The position numbers were made by a program, and so were the translations under genes. A stretch of DNA of 64,000 nt from Trichoplax adhaerens (lineage: Eukaryota > Animalia > Placozoa): the NCBI RefSeq assembly GCF_000150275.1, contig NW_002060943.1, positions 62,001 to 126,000 of the forward strand, written 5' to 3'. The notes under the pieces are model-generated. The model made no database searches. It worked only from the letters and a program-made list of their open reading frames with translations, and was not told the DNA's origin. This document shows positions 1,546-9,745 of the stretch, piece after piece (positions within the stretch are counted from its first letter, which is position 1; the number at the start of each line of letters is the position of its first letter).

Positions 1546-1681
1546 ATATTATTTTCCTATAAGATATTTGAATAAAAGTAGAAATAAAATGTATTACTAG
1601 ATGTCGGTATGAATTACTGCATTAGCCCGTTAGTTTTAGTTAGTTATACAGTACAGTATCCAAAACGAAATGTACTGTACA

Positions 1682-1690
1682 CCGTGTGCA
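1682..1690 (-). promoter_or_regulatory. Metal-responsive element (MRE) candidate
   Basis: ccGTGTGCA reads TGCACACGG on the minus strand, matching the MTF-1 core TGCRCNC plus the extended GG; about 220 bp upstream of the ATG at 1907. Confidence 0.5.
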
Positions 1691-1803
1691 GTGTACAGTT
1701 ATTACCGTATACTGTCTGTACTGTAGCACTATAGCAAAAAAAATAAATAAACAAATCAATCAAAAATCGGGATGGGTACAGACAGTCATGCGGACAATCT
1801 AAC

Positions 1804-1833
1804 TGCGCATGTCCAATATCCAATTTGTGACGT
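1804..1833 (+). promoter_or_regulatory. Proximal promoter motifs of the Cys-rich gene
   Basis: TGCGCATG (1804), two CCAAT (1813, 1820) and TGACGT CRE/ATF half-site (1828) clustered 75-100 bp before the ATG. Confidence 0.35.
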
Positions 1834-1906
1834 ACACTCCTACAGTACTCACTGGAGACCCTCTACAGTATGATGAAGGGTCGCTAGTACTCACCGCGCA
1901 ATCAAA

Positions 1907-4900
1907 ATGGGATGCTGTTACAACAGAATTTTTGACATTTCATTCTTTCTTCTTAAACTATAGCTGGAATTTGCAAATGTAGTCCTGACTGCAAGTGCAG
2001 AAACTGTCAATGCACATCAGACTGCAAATCATCCTGTGCAAAGAACTGCGACTGTTCTGGTTAGTTGAAACAAGTTCAATGAATACTCTACAGTCTACAG
2101 TCTATAGTAAACTGTATTGCAGATCTCAGTTGACTGCGTTATTTTCAATGTTTATGTTTAGCTGGCAATTGCAAATGCTGTTGTCATTGCGACTGTAGTA
2201 ACTGTCAATGTACATCGTGCAGCAAATCAACCAGTGGAAAAACTTGCGACTGTTCAGGTCAGTTAATAAAAGCATATAACGTAAACACCATTTCTTAAAC
2301 TATATCAGTTAAATAAATGTAATCACATAGTAATAATATCGTCGCTTCCCTATCTCGGTAATAGCGTATTACAGTAATCGAATTGTTTCTGGTATTTTAA
2401 TATTTAGACGATAATTGCACATGCTGTTCTCAATGCAACTGCACGAGCTGTAAATGCACATCATGTACTAAGTCGCCGAATGAAAACACTTGCGACTGTT
2501 CAGGTAAGTTAAAACAAATTAAATAAATACCATTTCTTATAGATAGGACTTACAATAATAATAATTAATTATAATCGAACCAATATAATCAGACATTACT
2601 CATTTCCTCACTTCCCTCCCTACCTTTTAGTAGTATTACATACTGTACGTACATATGCTATTTATATAGTGTATTGATTTATTTGTTTATGACTTTTACA
2701 TTTAGCTTGCGATTGCAAAAACTGCTCTGATTGCAACTGTACTAGCTGTAAATGCACATCATGCAGCAAATCGTCGAGTGGAAACACTTGCGACTGCTCA
2801 GGTCAGTTAATAAAGAGTCAAATAAATAATATGCGCTGCCTTAAGAGATATAATTTATATATTTATTATATTGAGAATATATCACAAGATATTACTCGTA
2901 TTATCACTTTCCTATGCTTGTGGTAGCGTGTTAATTTTATCGTTTCTGGCCATTACATTTAGCTTGCAATTGCAAGAGCTGCTCTGATTGCAACTGTACT
3001 AGCTGTAAATGTACATCATGCAGCAAATCGTCCAGTGGAAATACTTGCGACTGTTCAGGTCAGTTAATAAAAGAGTCAAATAAATAATATGCGCTACCTT
3101 AAAGAGATATAATTTATTCATTATATCGAAAATACGTCACAAGATAGTACTTGTATTGTCACTTTCCTATGCTTGTAGTATCGTGTTAATTTTATCGTTT
3201 CTGGCCTTTACATTTAGCTTGCAATTGCAAATGCTGCTCTGCTTGTAACTGTACTAGCTGTAAATGCACATCATGCAGCAAATCGTCCAGTGGGAACACT
3301 TGCGACTGCTCAGGTCAGTTAATAAAGAGTCAAATAAATAATATGCCCAACTTTAAAGGGATGTAATTTATTTATTATATCGAAAATACATCACAAGATA
3401 TCACTCGTATTGTCACTTTCCTATCCCTATAGTAGCGTATTAATTTTATCGTTTCTGGCTTTGCATTTAGCTGGCAATTGCAAATGTTGCTCTGATTGTA
3501 AATGCACTAGCTGTAAATGCACATCATGCAGCAAATCGTCCAGTGGAAACACTTGCGACTGTTCAGGTCAGTTAATAAGAATTAAATAAATAATTTGCCC
3601 AATTTTAAGGATATAATTTATTCATTATATCTAAAATATATCACAAGACATTACTCGTATCGTCACATTCCTATCCCTGTGGTAGCGTATTAATTTTATC
3701 GTTTCTGGCTTTCACATTTAGCTTGCAATTGCAAATGTTGCTCTGATTGTAACTGCACTAGCTGTAAATGCACATCATGCAGCAAATCGTCGAGTACAAA
3801 CACTTGCGACTGTTCAGGTCAGTTAATAAAGAGTCAAATAAATAATATGCCCAATTTTAAGGAGATATAATTTATTTATTATATCTAAAATATATCACAA
3901 GACATTACTCGTATCGTCACATTGCTATCCCTGTAGCAGCGTATTAATTTTATCGTTTTTGGCCTTTACATTTAGCTTGCAATTGCAAAAGCTGTTCTGA
4001 TTGTAACTGTACTAGCTGTAAATGCACATCATGCAGCAAATCGTCGAGTGGAAAAACTTGCGACTGTTCAGGTCAGTTAATAAAGAGTCGAATAAATAAT
4101 AAATAATATACACTACCTTAAAGAGATGTAATTTATTTATTATATCTATAATATATCACAAGATATTACTCGTATCGTCGCATTCCTACCTAGTTAGTAG
4201 CATATTAATTTTATCGTTTCTGACTTTTACATTTAGCTGGCAATTGCAAATGCTGTTATTATTGCAACTGTACTAGCTGTAAATGCACATCATGCAGCAA
4301 ATCGTCGAATGGAAACACTTGCGACTGTTCAGGTCAGTTAACTTCAATAAAGAATCAAATAAATAATAAATATTATGCACTACCTTAAAGAGATGTAATT
4401 TATTTATTATATCTATAATGTATCACAAGACATTACTCGTATCGTCGCATTCCTACCAAGTTAGTAGCGTATTAATTTTATCGTTTCTGGCCTTTACATT
4501 TAGCTGGCAATTGCAAATGCTGCTATTATTGCAACTGTACTAGCTGTAAATGCACATCATGTAGCAAATCGTCCAGTGGAAAAACTTGCGACTGTACAGG
4601 TCAGTTAATAAAGAATCAAATAAATAATAAATATTATGCACTACCTTAAAGAGATATAATTTATTTATTATATCTATAATATATCACAAGATATTACTCA
4701 AATCATCACATTCCTATCCCTCTAGTAGCGTATTAATTTCATTGTTTCTGGCTTTTATACTTAGCTTGCAATTGCAAAAGCTGTTCTGATTGTAACTGTA
4801 CTAGCTGTAAATGCACATCATGCAGTAAATCGTCAAGTGGAAACATTTGCGACTGTTCAGGTCAGTTAATAAAAATTCAAATAAATAATATACACTACCT

Positions 4901-7900
4901 TAAAGAGATACACGTATTATTTATTTACTGTATCTAAAATACGTCACCAGATATTACTCGTATCGTCACTTTCCTATCCTCTGGTAACGTATTAATTCTA
5001 TCGTTTCTGGCTTTTACATTTAGCTTGCAATTGCAAATGCTGTTCTGATTGTAACTGTACTAGCTGTAAATGCACATCATGTAGCAAATCGTCGAATGGA
5101 AACACTTGCGACTGTTCAGGTCAGTTATTAAAGAATCAAATAAATATATGTACTACCTTAAAAAGATGTGATTTATTTATTATATCTATAATATATCACC
5201 GGATATTATTGATATCATCGCATTCCTACCTAGTTAGTAGCGTGTTAATTTTATCGTTTCTGGCTTTTACATTTAGCTGGCAATTGCAAATGCTGTTCTG
5301 ATTGTAACTGTACTAGCTGTAAATGCACATCGTGCAGAAAATCGTCGAGTGGAAGAACTTGCGACTGTTCAGGTCAGTTAATAAAGAGTCAAATAAATAA
5401 TAAATAATATGCACTACCTTAAAGAAATATAATTTATTTATAATATATCACAAGATATTACTCAAATCATCACTTTCCTATCCCTGTAGTAGCGTATTAA
5501 TTTTATCGTTTCTGGCTTTTACATTTAGCTGGCAATTGCAAATGCTGTTCTGATTGTAACTGTACTAGCTGTAAATGCACATCATGCAGCAAATTGTCGA
5601 GTAAAAATACTTGCGACTGTTCAGGTCAGTTAATAAAGAGTCAAATANATAATAATAAATAATATACACTACCATAAAAAGATGTAATTTATTTATTATA
5701 TCTAAAATATATCACCGGATATTACTCGTATCGTCGCATGCCTACCTAGTTAGTAGCGTATTAATTTTATCGTTTCTGGCTTTTACATTTAGCTTGCAAT
5801 TGCAAGAGCTGTTATTATTGTAACTGTACTAGCTGTAAATGCACATCATGCAGCAAATCGTCGAGTGGAAAAACTTGCGACTGTTCAGGTCAGTTAATAA
5901 AGAATCAAGTAAATATATATATTACCTTAAAAAGATGTAATTTATTTATTATATCTATAATATATCACCGGATATTACTCGTTTCGTCGCATTCCTACCT
6001 AGTTAGTAGCGTATTAATTTTATCGTTTCTGGCTTTTGCATTTAGTTGGCAATTGCAAATGCTGTTCTGATTGCAACTGTACTAGTTGTAAATGCATATC
6101 ATGCAGCAAATCGTCCAGTGGAAGCACTTGCGACTGTTCGGGTCAGTTAATAAAGAATCAAATAAATATATGTACTACCTTAAAAAGATGTAATTTATTT
6201 ATTATATCTAAAATATATCACAAGACATTACTCGTATCGTCGTATTCCTACCTAGTTAGTAGCGTATTAATTTTATCGTTTCTGGCTGTTACATTTAGCT
6301 TGCAATTGCAAATGCTGCTCTGATTGTAACTGTACTAGCTGTAAATGCACATCATGCAGCAAATCGTCGAGTGGAAACACTTGCGACTGTTCAGGTCAGT
6401 TAATAAAGAGTCAAATAAATAATATGCCCAATTTTAAGGAGACATAATTTATTTATTATATCTAAAATATATCACAAGACATTACTCGTATCGTCGCATT
6501 GCTATCCCTGTAGCAGCGTATTAATTTTATCGTTTTTGGCTTTTACATTTAGCTTGCAATTGCAAAAGCTGTTCTGATTGTAACTGTATGAGCTGTAAAT
6601 GCACATCATGCAGCAAATCGTCGAGTGGAAAAACTTGCGACTGTTCAGGTCAGTTAATAAAGAGTCGAATAAATAATAAATAATATACACTACCTTAAAG
6701 AGATGTAATTTATTTATTATATCTATAATATATCACAAGATATTACTCGTATCGTCGCATTCCTACCTAGTTAGTAGCATGTTAATTTTATCGTTTCTGA
6801 CTTTTACATTTAGCTGGCAATTGCAAATGCTGTTATTATTGCAACTGTACTAGCTGTAAATGCACATCATGCAGCAAATCGTCGAATGGAAACACTTGCG
6901 ACTGTTCAGGTCAGTTAATAAAGAGTCGAGTAAATAATAAATCATATGCACTACCTTAAAAAGATGTAATTCATTTATTATATCTAAAATATTTCACCGG
7001 ATATAACTCGTATCGTCGCATTCCTACCTAGTTAGTAGCGTATTAATTTTATCGTTTCTGGCTTTTACATTTAGCTTGCAATTGCAAGATGCTGTTCTGA
7101 TTGTAACTGTACTAGCTGTAAATGCACATCATGCAGCAAATCGTCGAGTGGAAAAACTTGCGACTGTTCAGGTCAGTTAATAAAGAATCAAATAAATAAT
7201 AAATAATATGCACCACCTTAAAGAGATGTAATTTATTTACTATATCTATAATATATCACCAGATATTACTCGTATCGTCACTTTCCTAACCCTGTAGTAG
7301 CGTGTTAATTTTATCGTTTCTGACTTTTACATTTAGCTGGCAATTGCAAATGCTGTTACTATTGCAACTGTACTAGCTGTAAATGCACATCATGCAGCAA
7401 ATCGTCGAGTGGAAACACTTGCAACTGTTCAGGTCAGTTAATAAAGAGTCAAATAAATAATAAATATTATGCACTACCTTAAAGAGATATAATTTATTAT
7501 ATCTATAATATATCACCGGATATTACTGGTATCGTCGCATTCTTACCTAGTTAGTAGCGTATTAATTTTATCGTTTCTGGCTTTTACATTTAGCTTGCAA
7601 TTGCAAGAGCTGTTCTGATTGTAACTGTACTAGCTGTAAATGCACATCATGCAGCAAATCGTCCAGTGGAAACACTTGCGACTGTTCAGGTCAGCTAATA
7701 AAGATTCAAATAAATAATATGTAATACCTTAAAGAAATATAATTTATTTATCATATCTATAATATATCACCAGATATTACTCGTATCGCCACTTTCCTAA
7801 CCCTGTAGTAGCGTGTTAATTTTATCGTTTCTGGCTTTTTATATTTAGCTTGCAATTGCAAAAGCTGTTCTGATTGTAACTGTACGAGCTGTAAATGCAC

Positions 7901-8855
7901 ATCATGCAACAAATCTGCAAGTGGAAAAACTTACGACTTTTCAGGTCAGTTAAAACAAGTTAAAATAACACTATTCCTTAAAGATATAATTTATACTCGA
8001 ATAAACGTAATCAGACACTACTAGTATCGTTAATCTGCAATTCCTGTCGCAGTGTATTAATGTAATTGTTTCTGGCTTTTACAATAGCTTGCAATTGCAA
8101 ATGCTGTTCCGACCGCAATTGTACTAGCTGTAAATGTAAATGTACATCATGCAGCAAATCACCAAGTAAAAAAACTTGCGACTGTTCAGGTCAGTTAAAA
8201 ACGAGTTAAATGAATATACATGTCTTAAAGATATTTATTTATCTTCATTTTATTATAATTGAATAAAATGGGATCAGACATTATTCGGACCTTCGCTTTC
8301 CTAATTCTGTATTAGCATATTGATATCTCTGTTTCTGTCTTTACATTTAGCAGCCAATTGCAAATGCTGTTCTGATTGCGACTGCACTAGCTGCAAATGT
8401 GCATTATGCTGTAAAGCACTGAGTGGAAAGACTTACAGCTATTCAGGTCAGTTAGAGATACATTTTATAATAGCCGGATAAATATAATTGGACATTGCTT
8501 GTATTGTCGTTTTTCTTATACTTGTAGTAATATATCAAAGTTCATTGTTTCTGATTTTTACTTTTAGCTGGCAACTCTAAGTGCTGTTGTGAATGTGGCT
8601 GTACTAGCTGCGAATGCACGTCATGCAGTAAATCATCGCTAGTGGAAATACTTGCGACTGTTCAGGTTAGTAAAGTGAATACAATATCTTAAAGTAATCA
8701 GATATTAATCGGTTATTACGTTTCTATTCATGTAGTAGTGTATTAATTTCACTGTATCTGCCTAATATATTTAGCTACGAATTGCAAATGCTTTCCTGAT
8801 TGCGATTGCAATATCTGCAAATGTACTATTATGTAACAAATCATCTAATGAATAG
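1907..8855 (+). CDS. Giant multi-module metallothionein-like Cys-rich protein (spliced; short first exon plus 28 repeat exons)
   Basis: Probable start caaaATGG at 1907 (MGC, donor 1917; alternative ATG at 1870 with donor 1880). Repeat exons start at 1964, 2162, 2408, 2706, 2963, 3218, 3471, 3722, 3976, 4237, 4504, 4765, 5024, 5277, 5529, 5793, 6046, 6299, 6553, 6814, 7075, 7337, 7594, 7849, 8088, 8351, 8568, 8775, each after TAG and ending G|GT(C/T/A)AGT. Most are 96 nt, phase 1-1, consensus A[GC]NCK[CS]CSDCNCTSCKCTSCSKSSSGNTCDCS (CxC, CC, CxxC; Cys/Ser/Lys/Thr-rich; no signal peptide). Exon 7075 is 97 nt (frameshift), 8088 is 102 nt, 8568 is 98 nt, 8775 is 97 nt. Confidence 0.8.
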
Positions 8856-8871
8856 AGTCGCGGTTGTCCAG
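1964..8871 (+). repeat. Tandem array of ~255-bp exon+intron units (28 copies)
   Basis: Recurring unit: ...ttttatcgtttctggcttttacatttag, 96-nt Cys exon, gtcagttaataaagagtcaaataaataat...; central units are near-identical including introns, edge units are diverged. Confidence 0.97.
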
Positions 8872-9337
8872 GTTAGTTAAAACAAATTTAAATTAATTCT
8901 GTATTATAATAAAACAAATGTGCTTAGCATTATCTAATCACAACTTGTGGAATTCACGCTTTAACTCTATTCTCTATCAATCATCACAGGAAATGCAGCC
9001 AGCTATAATTATAAGAAATAGGAGTGTGTCAACCACAGCCGTTCAAAAGGATGCAGGAAGTTAATTTGCCATAGCTTTTACAATGAAACCTTCATCTTTT
9101 ACATGGGTACCTACTATCAATTGTTTACCGCTTATCTATAATAATTACATTCTAAAATATCTTGTTTAAGCGTTATAATCATAACAATAGACAGTTCGAC
9201 TATTCGGACACATACTCAAATTATAATTACTGCACCAATGCGCTATGCTAAGAAAATCAATAAAACTATTATTTTGAATCTATCTTGTGGAAGTCTTACT
9301 AAAAAAGTACAATACTAATTTTATCTATCACTACTAG

Positions 9338-9745
9338 CGATAACTAAAATTTCTATCGCATTTTAATCATAACTACGCGGATGAATAATGTTTGCACCTT
9401 GATGAGCTACTAAGAAGTTGGTGCATGTATCTGCTGAGTAATTTAATAAATAGATCATATTTGACTTAATTACCAACCGAGATTTAATATTGGTGTACGA
9501 GAATATTTCACTTAAAGTAAACGGAGCATAGAGCTGTTCTACGATAACTAAAATTTCTGTCGCATTTTAATCATAACTACGCGGATGAATAATGTTTGCA
9601 CCTTGATGAGCTACTAAGAAGTTGGTGCATGTATCTGCTGAGTAATTTAATAAATAAATCATATTTGACTTAATTACCAACCGAGATTTAATATTGGTGT
9701 ACGAGGATATTTCACTTAAAGTAAAATGAGCATAGAGCTGTTCGT
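9338..9745. repeat. Recent tandem duplication, 2 x ~204 bp
   Basis: cgataactaaaatttct...gagcatagagctgttc occurs at 9338 and 9542 with only a few substitutions. Confidence 0.95.

Follow-up and report, generated by a model that had tools for sequence, protein, structure and literature searches.

A 64,000-nt stretch of the genome of the placozoan Trichoplax adhaerens (contig NW_002060943.1, positions 62,001–126,000 of the forward strand; hereafter the window, to whose numbering all coordinates refer unless another sequence is named) contains an apparent 257-bp satellite. The present analysis confirms that this repeat is the body of a spliced gene, referred to here as gene B. The array is probably an expressed gene, one of two tandem paralogues that encode multi-module metallothioneins; the other, gene A, is intact and lies on the same strand, 3 kb upstream of the window.

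In the window, Tandem Repeats Finder reports one tandem array at 2667–8454, with a period of 261, 22.6 copies and 85% matches. A script that searches for AG...GT pairs around Cys-rich open frames divides the region 1964–8871 into 28 units, each with an AG/GT-flanked Cys-rich exon. The acceptors are of the type ttttacatttAG, and the donors are GTCAGT, GTTAGT or GTAAGT. The exons are exactly 96 nt long in 24 of the 28 units (97, 102, 98 and 97 nt in units 21, 25, 27 and 28, respectively), are separated by introns of 102–202 nt, and form with their introns a repeating unit of about 257 bp. Each exon contributes two bases of a split codon at its start and one at its end (G+CT, Ala) and is therefore symmetric, in phase 1. 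Translation in this phase yields 32 residues per exon, with the module consensus A-(C/G)NCK(C/S)CSDCNCTSCKCTSCSKSSSGNTCDCS. The original prediction, that the "satellite" is an array of phase-1 96-nt exons and introns bordered by AG and GT, is thus borne out by the 28 units and by GT..AG joints in RNA contigs (see below).

All exons are on the plus strand. Modules B1–B4 (1964–2059, 2162–2257, 2408–2503 and 2706–2801) show joints in RNA contigs and are 98–100% identical to modules A1–A4 of gene A. They are followed by the sixteen 96-nt exons of modules B5–B20 (2963–6909), starting at 2963, 3218, 3471, 3722, 3976, 4237, 4504 and 4765 (B5–B12) and at 5024, 5277, 5529, 5793, 6046, 6299, 6553 and 6814 (B13–B20), all in frame and with intact AG/GT sites. 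Module B21 (7075–7171, 97 nt) carries a +1 frameshift and a stop codon at 7098–7100, and modules B22 and B23 (7337–7432 and 7594–7689) are intact. Modules B24–B26 (7849–7944, 8088–8189 and 8351–8446) are degenerate, module B27 (8568–8665, 98 nt) contains a CT insertion (+2), and the terminal exon (8775–8913) comprises module B28, a stop codon and an AATAAA signal.

Comparison of 19 central exons (units 4–23 except unit 21) reveals the signature of a coding sequence. These exons are all 96 nt long and free of indels, and their codon positions 1, 2 and 3 have a nucleotide diversity of 0.060, 0.057 and 0.131, respectively. Nucleotide diversity in the introns is 0.123; the intron alignment has gaps in 49 of its 185 columns, and the near-constant parts of the introns are the first six bases and the acceptor region. 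In the exons, nine Cys columns are constant despite alternation of TGC and TGT at most of them, while two more are variable (Cys/Gly and Cys/Ser/Asn). The distribution of diversity over the codon positions, the absence of exon indels and the constant Cys columns are what is expected of a translated sequence, not of a satellite. With a pooled ratio of non-synonymous to synonymous differences (pN/pS) of 0.26, the central exons are shown to be under purifying selection. In the alignment of the central units the claim also held that substitutions avoid the Cys codons and that indels, apart from those of one unit, are intronic.

Splicing was examined by comparing window positions 1600–7599 with the contigs of three RNA-like runs and one DNA run (X3); the evidence thus comes from contigs, not reads. 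Runs X19 and X20 are recorded RNA-Seq of two samples from one study, whereas run X16 is only guessed to be RNA and its contigs, which are colinear with the introns, are uninformative on splicing. The X19 and X20 contigs contain the GT..AG joints 2059|2162, 2257|2408, 2503|2706, 2801|2963 and 6394|6553, which coincide exactly with the predicted exon borders, and none of these five joints is present in the contigs of DNA run X3. Junctions across the introns, as the original prediction required, are thus present in contigs of both RNA-Seq samples. In one X20 contig of 884 nt, 550 upstream letters precede modules 1, 2 and 3 and the beginning of module 4. RNA of modules 1–4 may come from either gene, because the exons of B1–B4 are nearly identical to those of A1–A4. 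Further RNA contigs lie on 6046–6140 and, with no mismatch, on the Tyr-Tyr-containing (YY-type) module at 6812–6872; such modules are not found in gene A.

The 884-nt contig also points to the start of the gene. Its letters directly before position 1964 are, letter for letter, those of gene A exon 1 (positions 5219–5258 of L011), of which the window contains a copy at 856–895, in a region that is 88.7% identical to the sister region. The segment 856–895 would be the true first coding exon of gene B, because it is a copy of the exon that the RNA contig joins at 1964; the junction 895|1964 is deduced from this identity of the sister regions. The 40-nt coding part comprises, from the ATG on, 13 codons in all plus one base, ends in phase 1 before the donor GTAAGT at 896, and encodes MDSLTDRPCNYVE. 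An in-frame TAA precedes the ATG by 24 nt, and letters specific to gene B relative to gene A are TTAACAGATAGA and AACTATG. By inspection, the N-terminus is acidic, has no hydrophobic run and contains no signal peptide, in agreement with the original prediction. The predicted start at ATG 1907, on the other hand, proved wrong: this codon lies inside the 1068-nt intron 1 (896–1963), no 1916|1964 joint occurs in any run, and the unspliced frame ends at a TAG at 1961–1963. Both a start exon at ATG 1907 with GTTACA as donor and an exon at ATGATGAAGG (~1871–1880) were rejected, as neither shows a joint and the RNA contig links another upstream exon to 1964. The first intron is located two to three residues past the first CxC and is in phase 1, which are the position and phase of the first intron in mammalian metallothionein genes. 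Short TACAGTAC-type repeats occur in intron 1 of gene B (1440–1545) and also in intron 1 of a small metallothionein gene described below (L012 1500–1620).

Upstream of exon 1, on the plus strand, a TATA box (TATAAATA, 701–708) forms the end of a proximal promoter block (640–708) that is alignable among gene B, gene A and the small metallothionein gene. The motif CCGCANNGCACT is present at 253–264, 373–384 and 654–665, at intervals of 120 and 281 bp. Three copies at identical intervals precede gene A (L011 4618–5031), and a single copy precedes the small gene (L012 907–918). Genome-wide there are 49 copies of CCGCANNGCACT, versus 126 of a reversed control pattern, and seven of the 49 are in the three metallothionein promoters, which makes the motif a candidate regulatory element. 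The 900 bp that precede gene A and those that precede gene B contain no classical metal response element (TGCRCNC). Two further copies of CCGCANNGCACT are found on contig C1410, in an unrelated 82-bp tandem repeat (L017 1150–1400, G000:C1410:6279150–6279400) that sits upstream of an open reading frame (MASSSKKSN...) with no Pfam match.

A six-frame search of the whole assembly with one module as query shows that its matches are confined to this contig, where they comprise the array in the window and the second array upstream of it. The latter is the body of gene A (L011 5219–8826, corresponding to G000:C1414:57219–60826). Its exon 1 encodes MDSSTDIPCNCVE and is followed by ten 96-nt modules and an eleventh with a stop codon at 8824–8826 of L011; gene A has its own promoter and polyadenylation signal. 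The predicted product contains 359 residues, including 113 Cys, 1 His and no aromatic residue. An open frame upstream of the gene A array that resembles a signal peptide (L011 ~6030–6050) was discarded, since it lies in intron 1 of gene A and the real exon 1 is elsewhere. A copy of the gene A promoter region with 99.5% identity is present on the unplaced L013 (contig C804, 2628 bp), which is probably a redundant haplotype contig.

The duplication that separates genes A and B spans the promoter, exon 1, the array and the 3' flank. In a tree of the modules, strongly supported pairs unite A1–A5 with B1–B5, A10 with B25 and A11 with B28, while B6–B23 form one poorly resolved clade that includes A4–A7. 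The pairing implies that the common ancestor of the two genes had about 11 modules and that the middle of gene B expanded later. B9 and B19 pair in the tree, as do B10 and B20, in both cases ten units apart, and these pairs point to a block duplication.

The small metallothionein gene is located 1.2 Mb away and has three exons (L012 1094–1121, 2399–2494 and 2863–2937), which together encode 65 residues with 19 Cys. Exon 1 encodes MDPPCNCAE and ends in phase 1 at a donor, GAAA|GTAAGTAC, that is the same as in the genes with arrays. Exon 2 is 96 nt long with phase 1–1, and aligns without gaps to module B1 (39% identity, E 4e-6). Not only the module but also the proximal promoter and exon 1 can be aligned with those of genes A and B. 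The small gene differs from genes A and B in having a single module and a distinct third exon with 7 Cys that neither of them contains, but shares with them the promoter block, the first exon, the donor, and the size and phase of the second exon. As judged from these alignments, the common promoter, exon 1 and 96-nt exon show genes A and B to be paralogues of the small gene with an amplified exon 2. A third copy of the promoter and exon 1, 74–84% identical, was observed on the minus strand at L018 2700–3040 (G000:C1414 ~6.2572–6.2575 Mb). In this copy exon 1 has lost both Cys and contains an in-frame stop, and the 10 kb downstream contain no Cys-rich exon; the copy is possibly a relic, or else a promoter that another gene now uses.

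Based on these results, the following model can be proposed for gene B. Transcription would start from the TATA promoter, and the short exon 1 (856–895) would provide the acidic N-terminus without a signal peptide, to be followed by 27 internal exons of ~96 nt with phase 1–1 and by a terminal exon with the stop codon and AATAAA. All module exons would be copies of the small gene's exon 2. Unequal crossing-over between the 257-bp exon-plus-intron units would set the module number, and modules could be gained or lost in frame because the exon is symmetric in phase; in this way the middle of gene B may have grown from about 11 to 28 modules. The product would be a cytosolic protein with ~30% Cys, with a predicted length of 661 residues as assembled or 906 residues if base 7090 is spurious. 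The putative metal-binding unit is bounded by the Ser/Gly-rich linker SKSSSGNT, and would thus extend from the last CxC of one exon to residue 19 of the next. Its 10–11 Cys follow the order [CxC]x2-4[CxC..]x2[CxC]x2[CxC]x2C, which would be close to the 9-Cys vertebrate beta domain. Each unit could form a thiolate cluster with three to four divalent Zn or Cd ions, or with a larger number of Cu(I) ions, and a chain of 20–26 such domains might hold roughly 60–100 ions in all, buffering or detoxifying metals at high capacity. Translation of gene B, metal binding by its product, the stoichiometry and the regulation are inferred in this model.

How long the protein can be depends on the 3' part of the gene. 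As assembled, exon 1 and modules 1–20 are open over 661 codons, which specify 661 residues with 208 Cys. However, the sole contig of DNA run X3 that covers module 21 does not contain one base at 7090, so that the shift in this module may be a reference error or a polymorphism. This contig has a word depth of ~60, versus ~20 for contigs on nearby unique sequence, and because of this about threefold depth it may itself represent several collapsed units. Without base 7090 the frame is open through module 26, and the shifts in modules 27 (+2) and 28 (+1) cancel each other, leading to the ancestral ...NKSSNE stop and to a product of 906 residues with 273 Cys. The originally predicted 28 modules with 864–896 residues and ~270 Cys come close to the latter values, but the reference frame yields only the shorter product. 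Likewise, the 28 units were recovered, whereas in the reference their fusion into one intact frame is contradicted by the shifts in units 21, 27 and 28 and by the Cys losses in units 24 and 26.

At the 3' end, module B25 (102 nt) has one Cys replaced by Arg, and module B28 carries a +1 insertion relative to its orthologue A11. The stop codon of the terminal exon is at 8834–8836 in the phase-1 frame or at 8853–8855 in the frame after B27, and AATAAA follows at 8908–8913, 37 nt past the B28 "donor". In gene A, where A11 ends with ...SKSSNE, the stop codon and AATAAA are in the same places (AATAAA at L011 8875). Because of the Cys losses, shifts and long tree branches of modules 24–28, gene B looks relaxed in its 3' fifth and constrained in its first 20–23 modules. 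The 906-residue form would contain near its end a segment of ~28 hydrophobic residues, out of the ancestral frame, with a mean Kyte-Doolittle value of up to 1.98 over 19 residues, and then seven polar residues. As this is the layout of a C-terminal tail anchor, a spurious base 7090 together with real shifts in modules 27 and 28 would predict a membrane-tethered metallothionein with 26 metal-binding modules, an outcome that we regard as very improbable. We know of no membrane-tethered metallothionein. Farther downstream, a 204-bp tandem duplication (2.0 copies, 97% matches) was observed at 9338–9743, in a region that, apart from this duplication, corresponds to the 3' flank of gene A.

The resemblance of gene B to metallothioneins lies mainly in its Cys residues, which make up 31.5% (208/661) or 30.1% (273/906) of the protein and occur 9–11 per module as CxC, CC and CxxC. 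The 661-residue form has one His and ten aromatic residues, i.e. one Phe and the nine Tyr of the YY modules. When the protein is split at the linkers, the units follow the patterns [CxC]x4[CxCC]x2[CxC]x2[CxC]x2C (eight times) and [CxC]x2[CxC]x2Cx2[CxC]x2[CxC]x2C (six times), with an 11-Cys variant occurring four times; gene A exon 1 and module 1 together give [CxC]x5[CxC]x3[CxC]x2[CxC]x3C. A search of the Protein Data Bank (PDB) with a module profile retrieves only two distinct sequences, the beta domains of mouse MT-1 and human MT-2 (E 0.33 and 4.9, respectively); these matches are suggestive, a lead and not proof. With single module sequences the solved structures give only noise. No match was obtained with a 25-module profile against 1.84 billion representative proteins at E up to 0.001, in word-indexed protein searches with a 101-aa open frame and with a 50-aa frame scored on residues 10–49, or in JGI metagenome contigs with a degenerate DNA pattern for CNCTSCKCTSC. 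In these searches no protein model or close homologue of gene B was found, although very short or biased matches were possibly filtered out, and a literature search retrieved no paper on a placozoan metallothionein. That the gene escapes annotation, as had been anticipated, is consistent with this lack of a protein model and with the presence of only four unspliced open frames of at least 60 aa, on both strands, in the 8.2 kb of the array. A length of 661–906 residues is outside the low-mass criterion for metallothioneins (~60–70 aa), but multi-module exceptions of 365–399 residues are already accepted (PMC8476144, PMC8283569).

Several observations weigh against the interpretation of gene B as a working metallothionein gene, and have to be considered together with other explanations of the array. 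The sole RNA contig that shows a first exon has the gene A version, and exon 1 of gene B encodes Tyr at the position that the second Cys of the CxC occupies in gene A and in the small gene. In module 21 the +1 shift (...CNCKMLF, stop) ends the reference frame, and the seven spliced exons after this stop would normally invite nonsense-mediated decay. Modules B24 and B26 are without their last CxC (TYDFS and TYSYS, respectively), and have thus lost two Cys each; the degenerate modules 24–28 are on long tree branches, with that of B26 long and that of B27 longest. Moreover, no RNA contig of X19 or X20 spans the whole array within 1600–7599, and the RNA joints 6141|3722, 7432|2963 and 7432|4765, although all from an exon end to an exon start, run backward relative to the reference. 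At the protein level, five modules contain Tyr-Tyr, which is unusual for metallothioneins, five single modules (31 aa) searched against Pfam at E up to 10 match no family, and the beta-domain matches in the PDB are not significant. Alternatively, gene B could be a decaying duplicate that still undergoes transcription and splicing, with a truncated, unstable or absent product, leaving gene A as the working multi-module metallothionein. The shift and stop in module 21, the replacement of Cys by Tyr in exon 1, the Cys losses in modules 24 and 26 and the shifts in modules 27 and 28 all favour such a decay, as do the branches of B26, B27 and B28, which are much longer than those of their gene A counterparts, and the 11 clean exons of gene A with their 113 Cys and no aromatic residue. 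Nevertheless, gene B has an unbroken run of twenty intact modules, none of its 28 splice-site pairs is lost, its pN/pS is 0.26, the central exons have no indels while the introns have many, B-type exon-exon junctions occur in RNA, and the extra base of module 21 is not present in the only contig of the independent DNA run that covers it. Decay of gene B is regarded as unlikely, and less probable than its function as a multi-module metallothionein gene.

The number of units and the three frame-changing indels rest on one assembly, and it could be argued that the true locus has fewer or reordered units, which were inflated or shuffled by shotgun assembly. Of the 31-letter words sampled from the stretch, only about half occur in independent DNA runs, many contigs can be placed at two positions, and the odd base of module 21 resembles a mixture of the module variants AAGAGC and AAATGC. 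RNA contigs also link modules in another order: in addition to the backward joints, there is a joint to a distant module (2257|6050), and the end of B22 (7432) is joined to the starts of other modules. These out-of-order joints may reflect path ambiguity of short-word contigs among near-identical modules, another module order in the organism sampled, or back-splicing. Collapse of such repeats is, however, expected for short-read contigs, and the units, being 12–15% divergent at every offset, should be told apart by long shotgun reads. The assembled array is free of gaps, with 5648 as its one ambiguous base, and the orthologous pairs A1–A5/B1–B5, A10/B25 and A11/B28 define a coherent order, which makes an artefact of assembly quite improbable. 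Finally, the array could encode an intracellular Cys-rich repeat protein that does not chelate metals and serves in redox buffering or as a disulfide cross-linked structure, like the high-sulphur keratin-associated proteins. The Tyr-Tyr pairs, the lack of a Pfam metallothionein family for single modules and the absence of homologues from large protein libraries would agree with this. On the other hand, the promoter, first exon and module are paralogous to those of a 65-residue gene whose layout is that of a classical metallothionein, the Cys residues are spaced as CxC, CC and CxxC throughout and do not resemble the pentapeptide repeats of keratin-associated proteins, and the only structures that match the module profile are metallothionein beta domains. 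A function other than metal chelation is considered the most improbable of these explanations. A secreted disulfide-rich protein is not indicated either, since there is no hydrophobic N-terminus, and the five single modules contain no Pfam domain. The assignment as a metallothionein made in the original prediction hence stands with respect to the Cys composition, the absence of a signal peptide and the paralogy to the 65-residue gene, but is not matched by a Pfam assignment of the five single modules.

Metallothioneins are hard to trace in evolution, and little has been recorded for animals outside Bilateria. Here a small gene and two multi-module derivatives are present within the genome of one of the simplest animals. 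Their mode of growth is unusually clear, as a symmetric phase-1 exon with its intron would serve as the unit of crossing-over, and each step would remain in frame. The position and phase of the first intron and the Cys order of the first domain, both like those of the vertebrate beta domain, bear on the question of a single origin of animal metallothioneins. Gene B is probably missing from placozoan expression atlases, because it is invisible to ORF-based and repeat-masked annotation.

Multi-module metallothioneins are known from tunicates, molluscs and fungi, among others (PMC8476144). OdiMT2 of Oikopleura dioica has 399 residues, 123 Cys and six repeat units, with three to seven units among populations (PMC8283569). 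Like gene B, it is a multi-module protein beside a small paralogue, was built by internal tandem duplication and contains ~31% Cys; introns mark the repeats, and for OdiMT2 the repeat number differs between populations. Unlike the modules of gene B, the repeats of OdiMT2 are domain pairs of ~65 residues, with another Cys motif that is thought to have arisen de novo in appendicularians. OdiMT2 is, moreover, at most about half as long as predicted for gene B, and its metal binding is experimental whereas that of gene B is inferred.

A second tunicate protein, BscMT1 of Botryllus schlosseri, has 365 residues, 105 Cys and nine 12-Cys domains, and binds 36 Zn; its metal capacity is proportional to the number of domains (PMC8476144). 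It likewise consists of tandem repeats of the mono-modular metallothionein domain of its own lineage, and is close in size to gene A (359 residues, 113 Cys), but it belongs to another phylum, has nine modules compared with 20–28 in gene B, and its 12-Cys domain has a terminal CC. The metallothioneins of the door snail Alinda biplicata contain 9–10 domains (PMC7084494, PMC11645667). They resemble gene B in repeating 9-Cys beta-type domains, each of which is taken to bind three divalent ions, but have fewer domains with a mollusc-specific sequence, and both Cd binding and Cd induction have been shown for them. The vertebrate beta domain, finally, has the pattern [CxC]x5[CxC]x3[CxC]x2[CxC]x2C (PMC8476144; PDB entries 1dft and 2mhu). 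Exon 1 and module 1 of gene A together approach this order, and its ...[CxC]x2[CxC]x2C half is retained in the central units. The similarity is not significant, however (E 0.33 for 1dft and 4.9 for 2mhu), no alpha domain is present, and Cys-rich sequences align easily by chance (PMC8476144). Compared with OdiMT2 and BscMT1, the largest proteins in the cited papers, gene B as predicted would be 1.7- to 2.3-fold longer, while gene A equals them. What sets the placozoan genes apart from these systems is the record size that gene B would reach, the new phylum and an unusually clean architecture with one exon per module.

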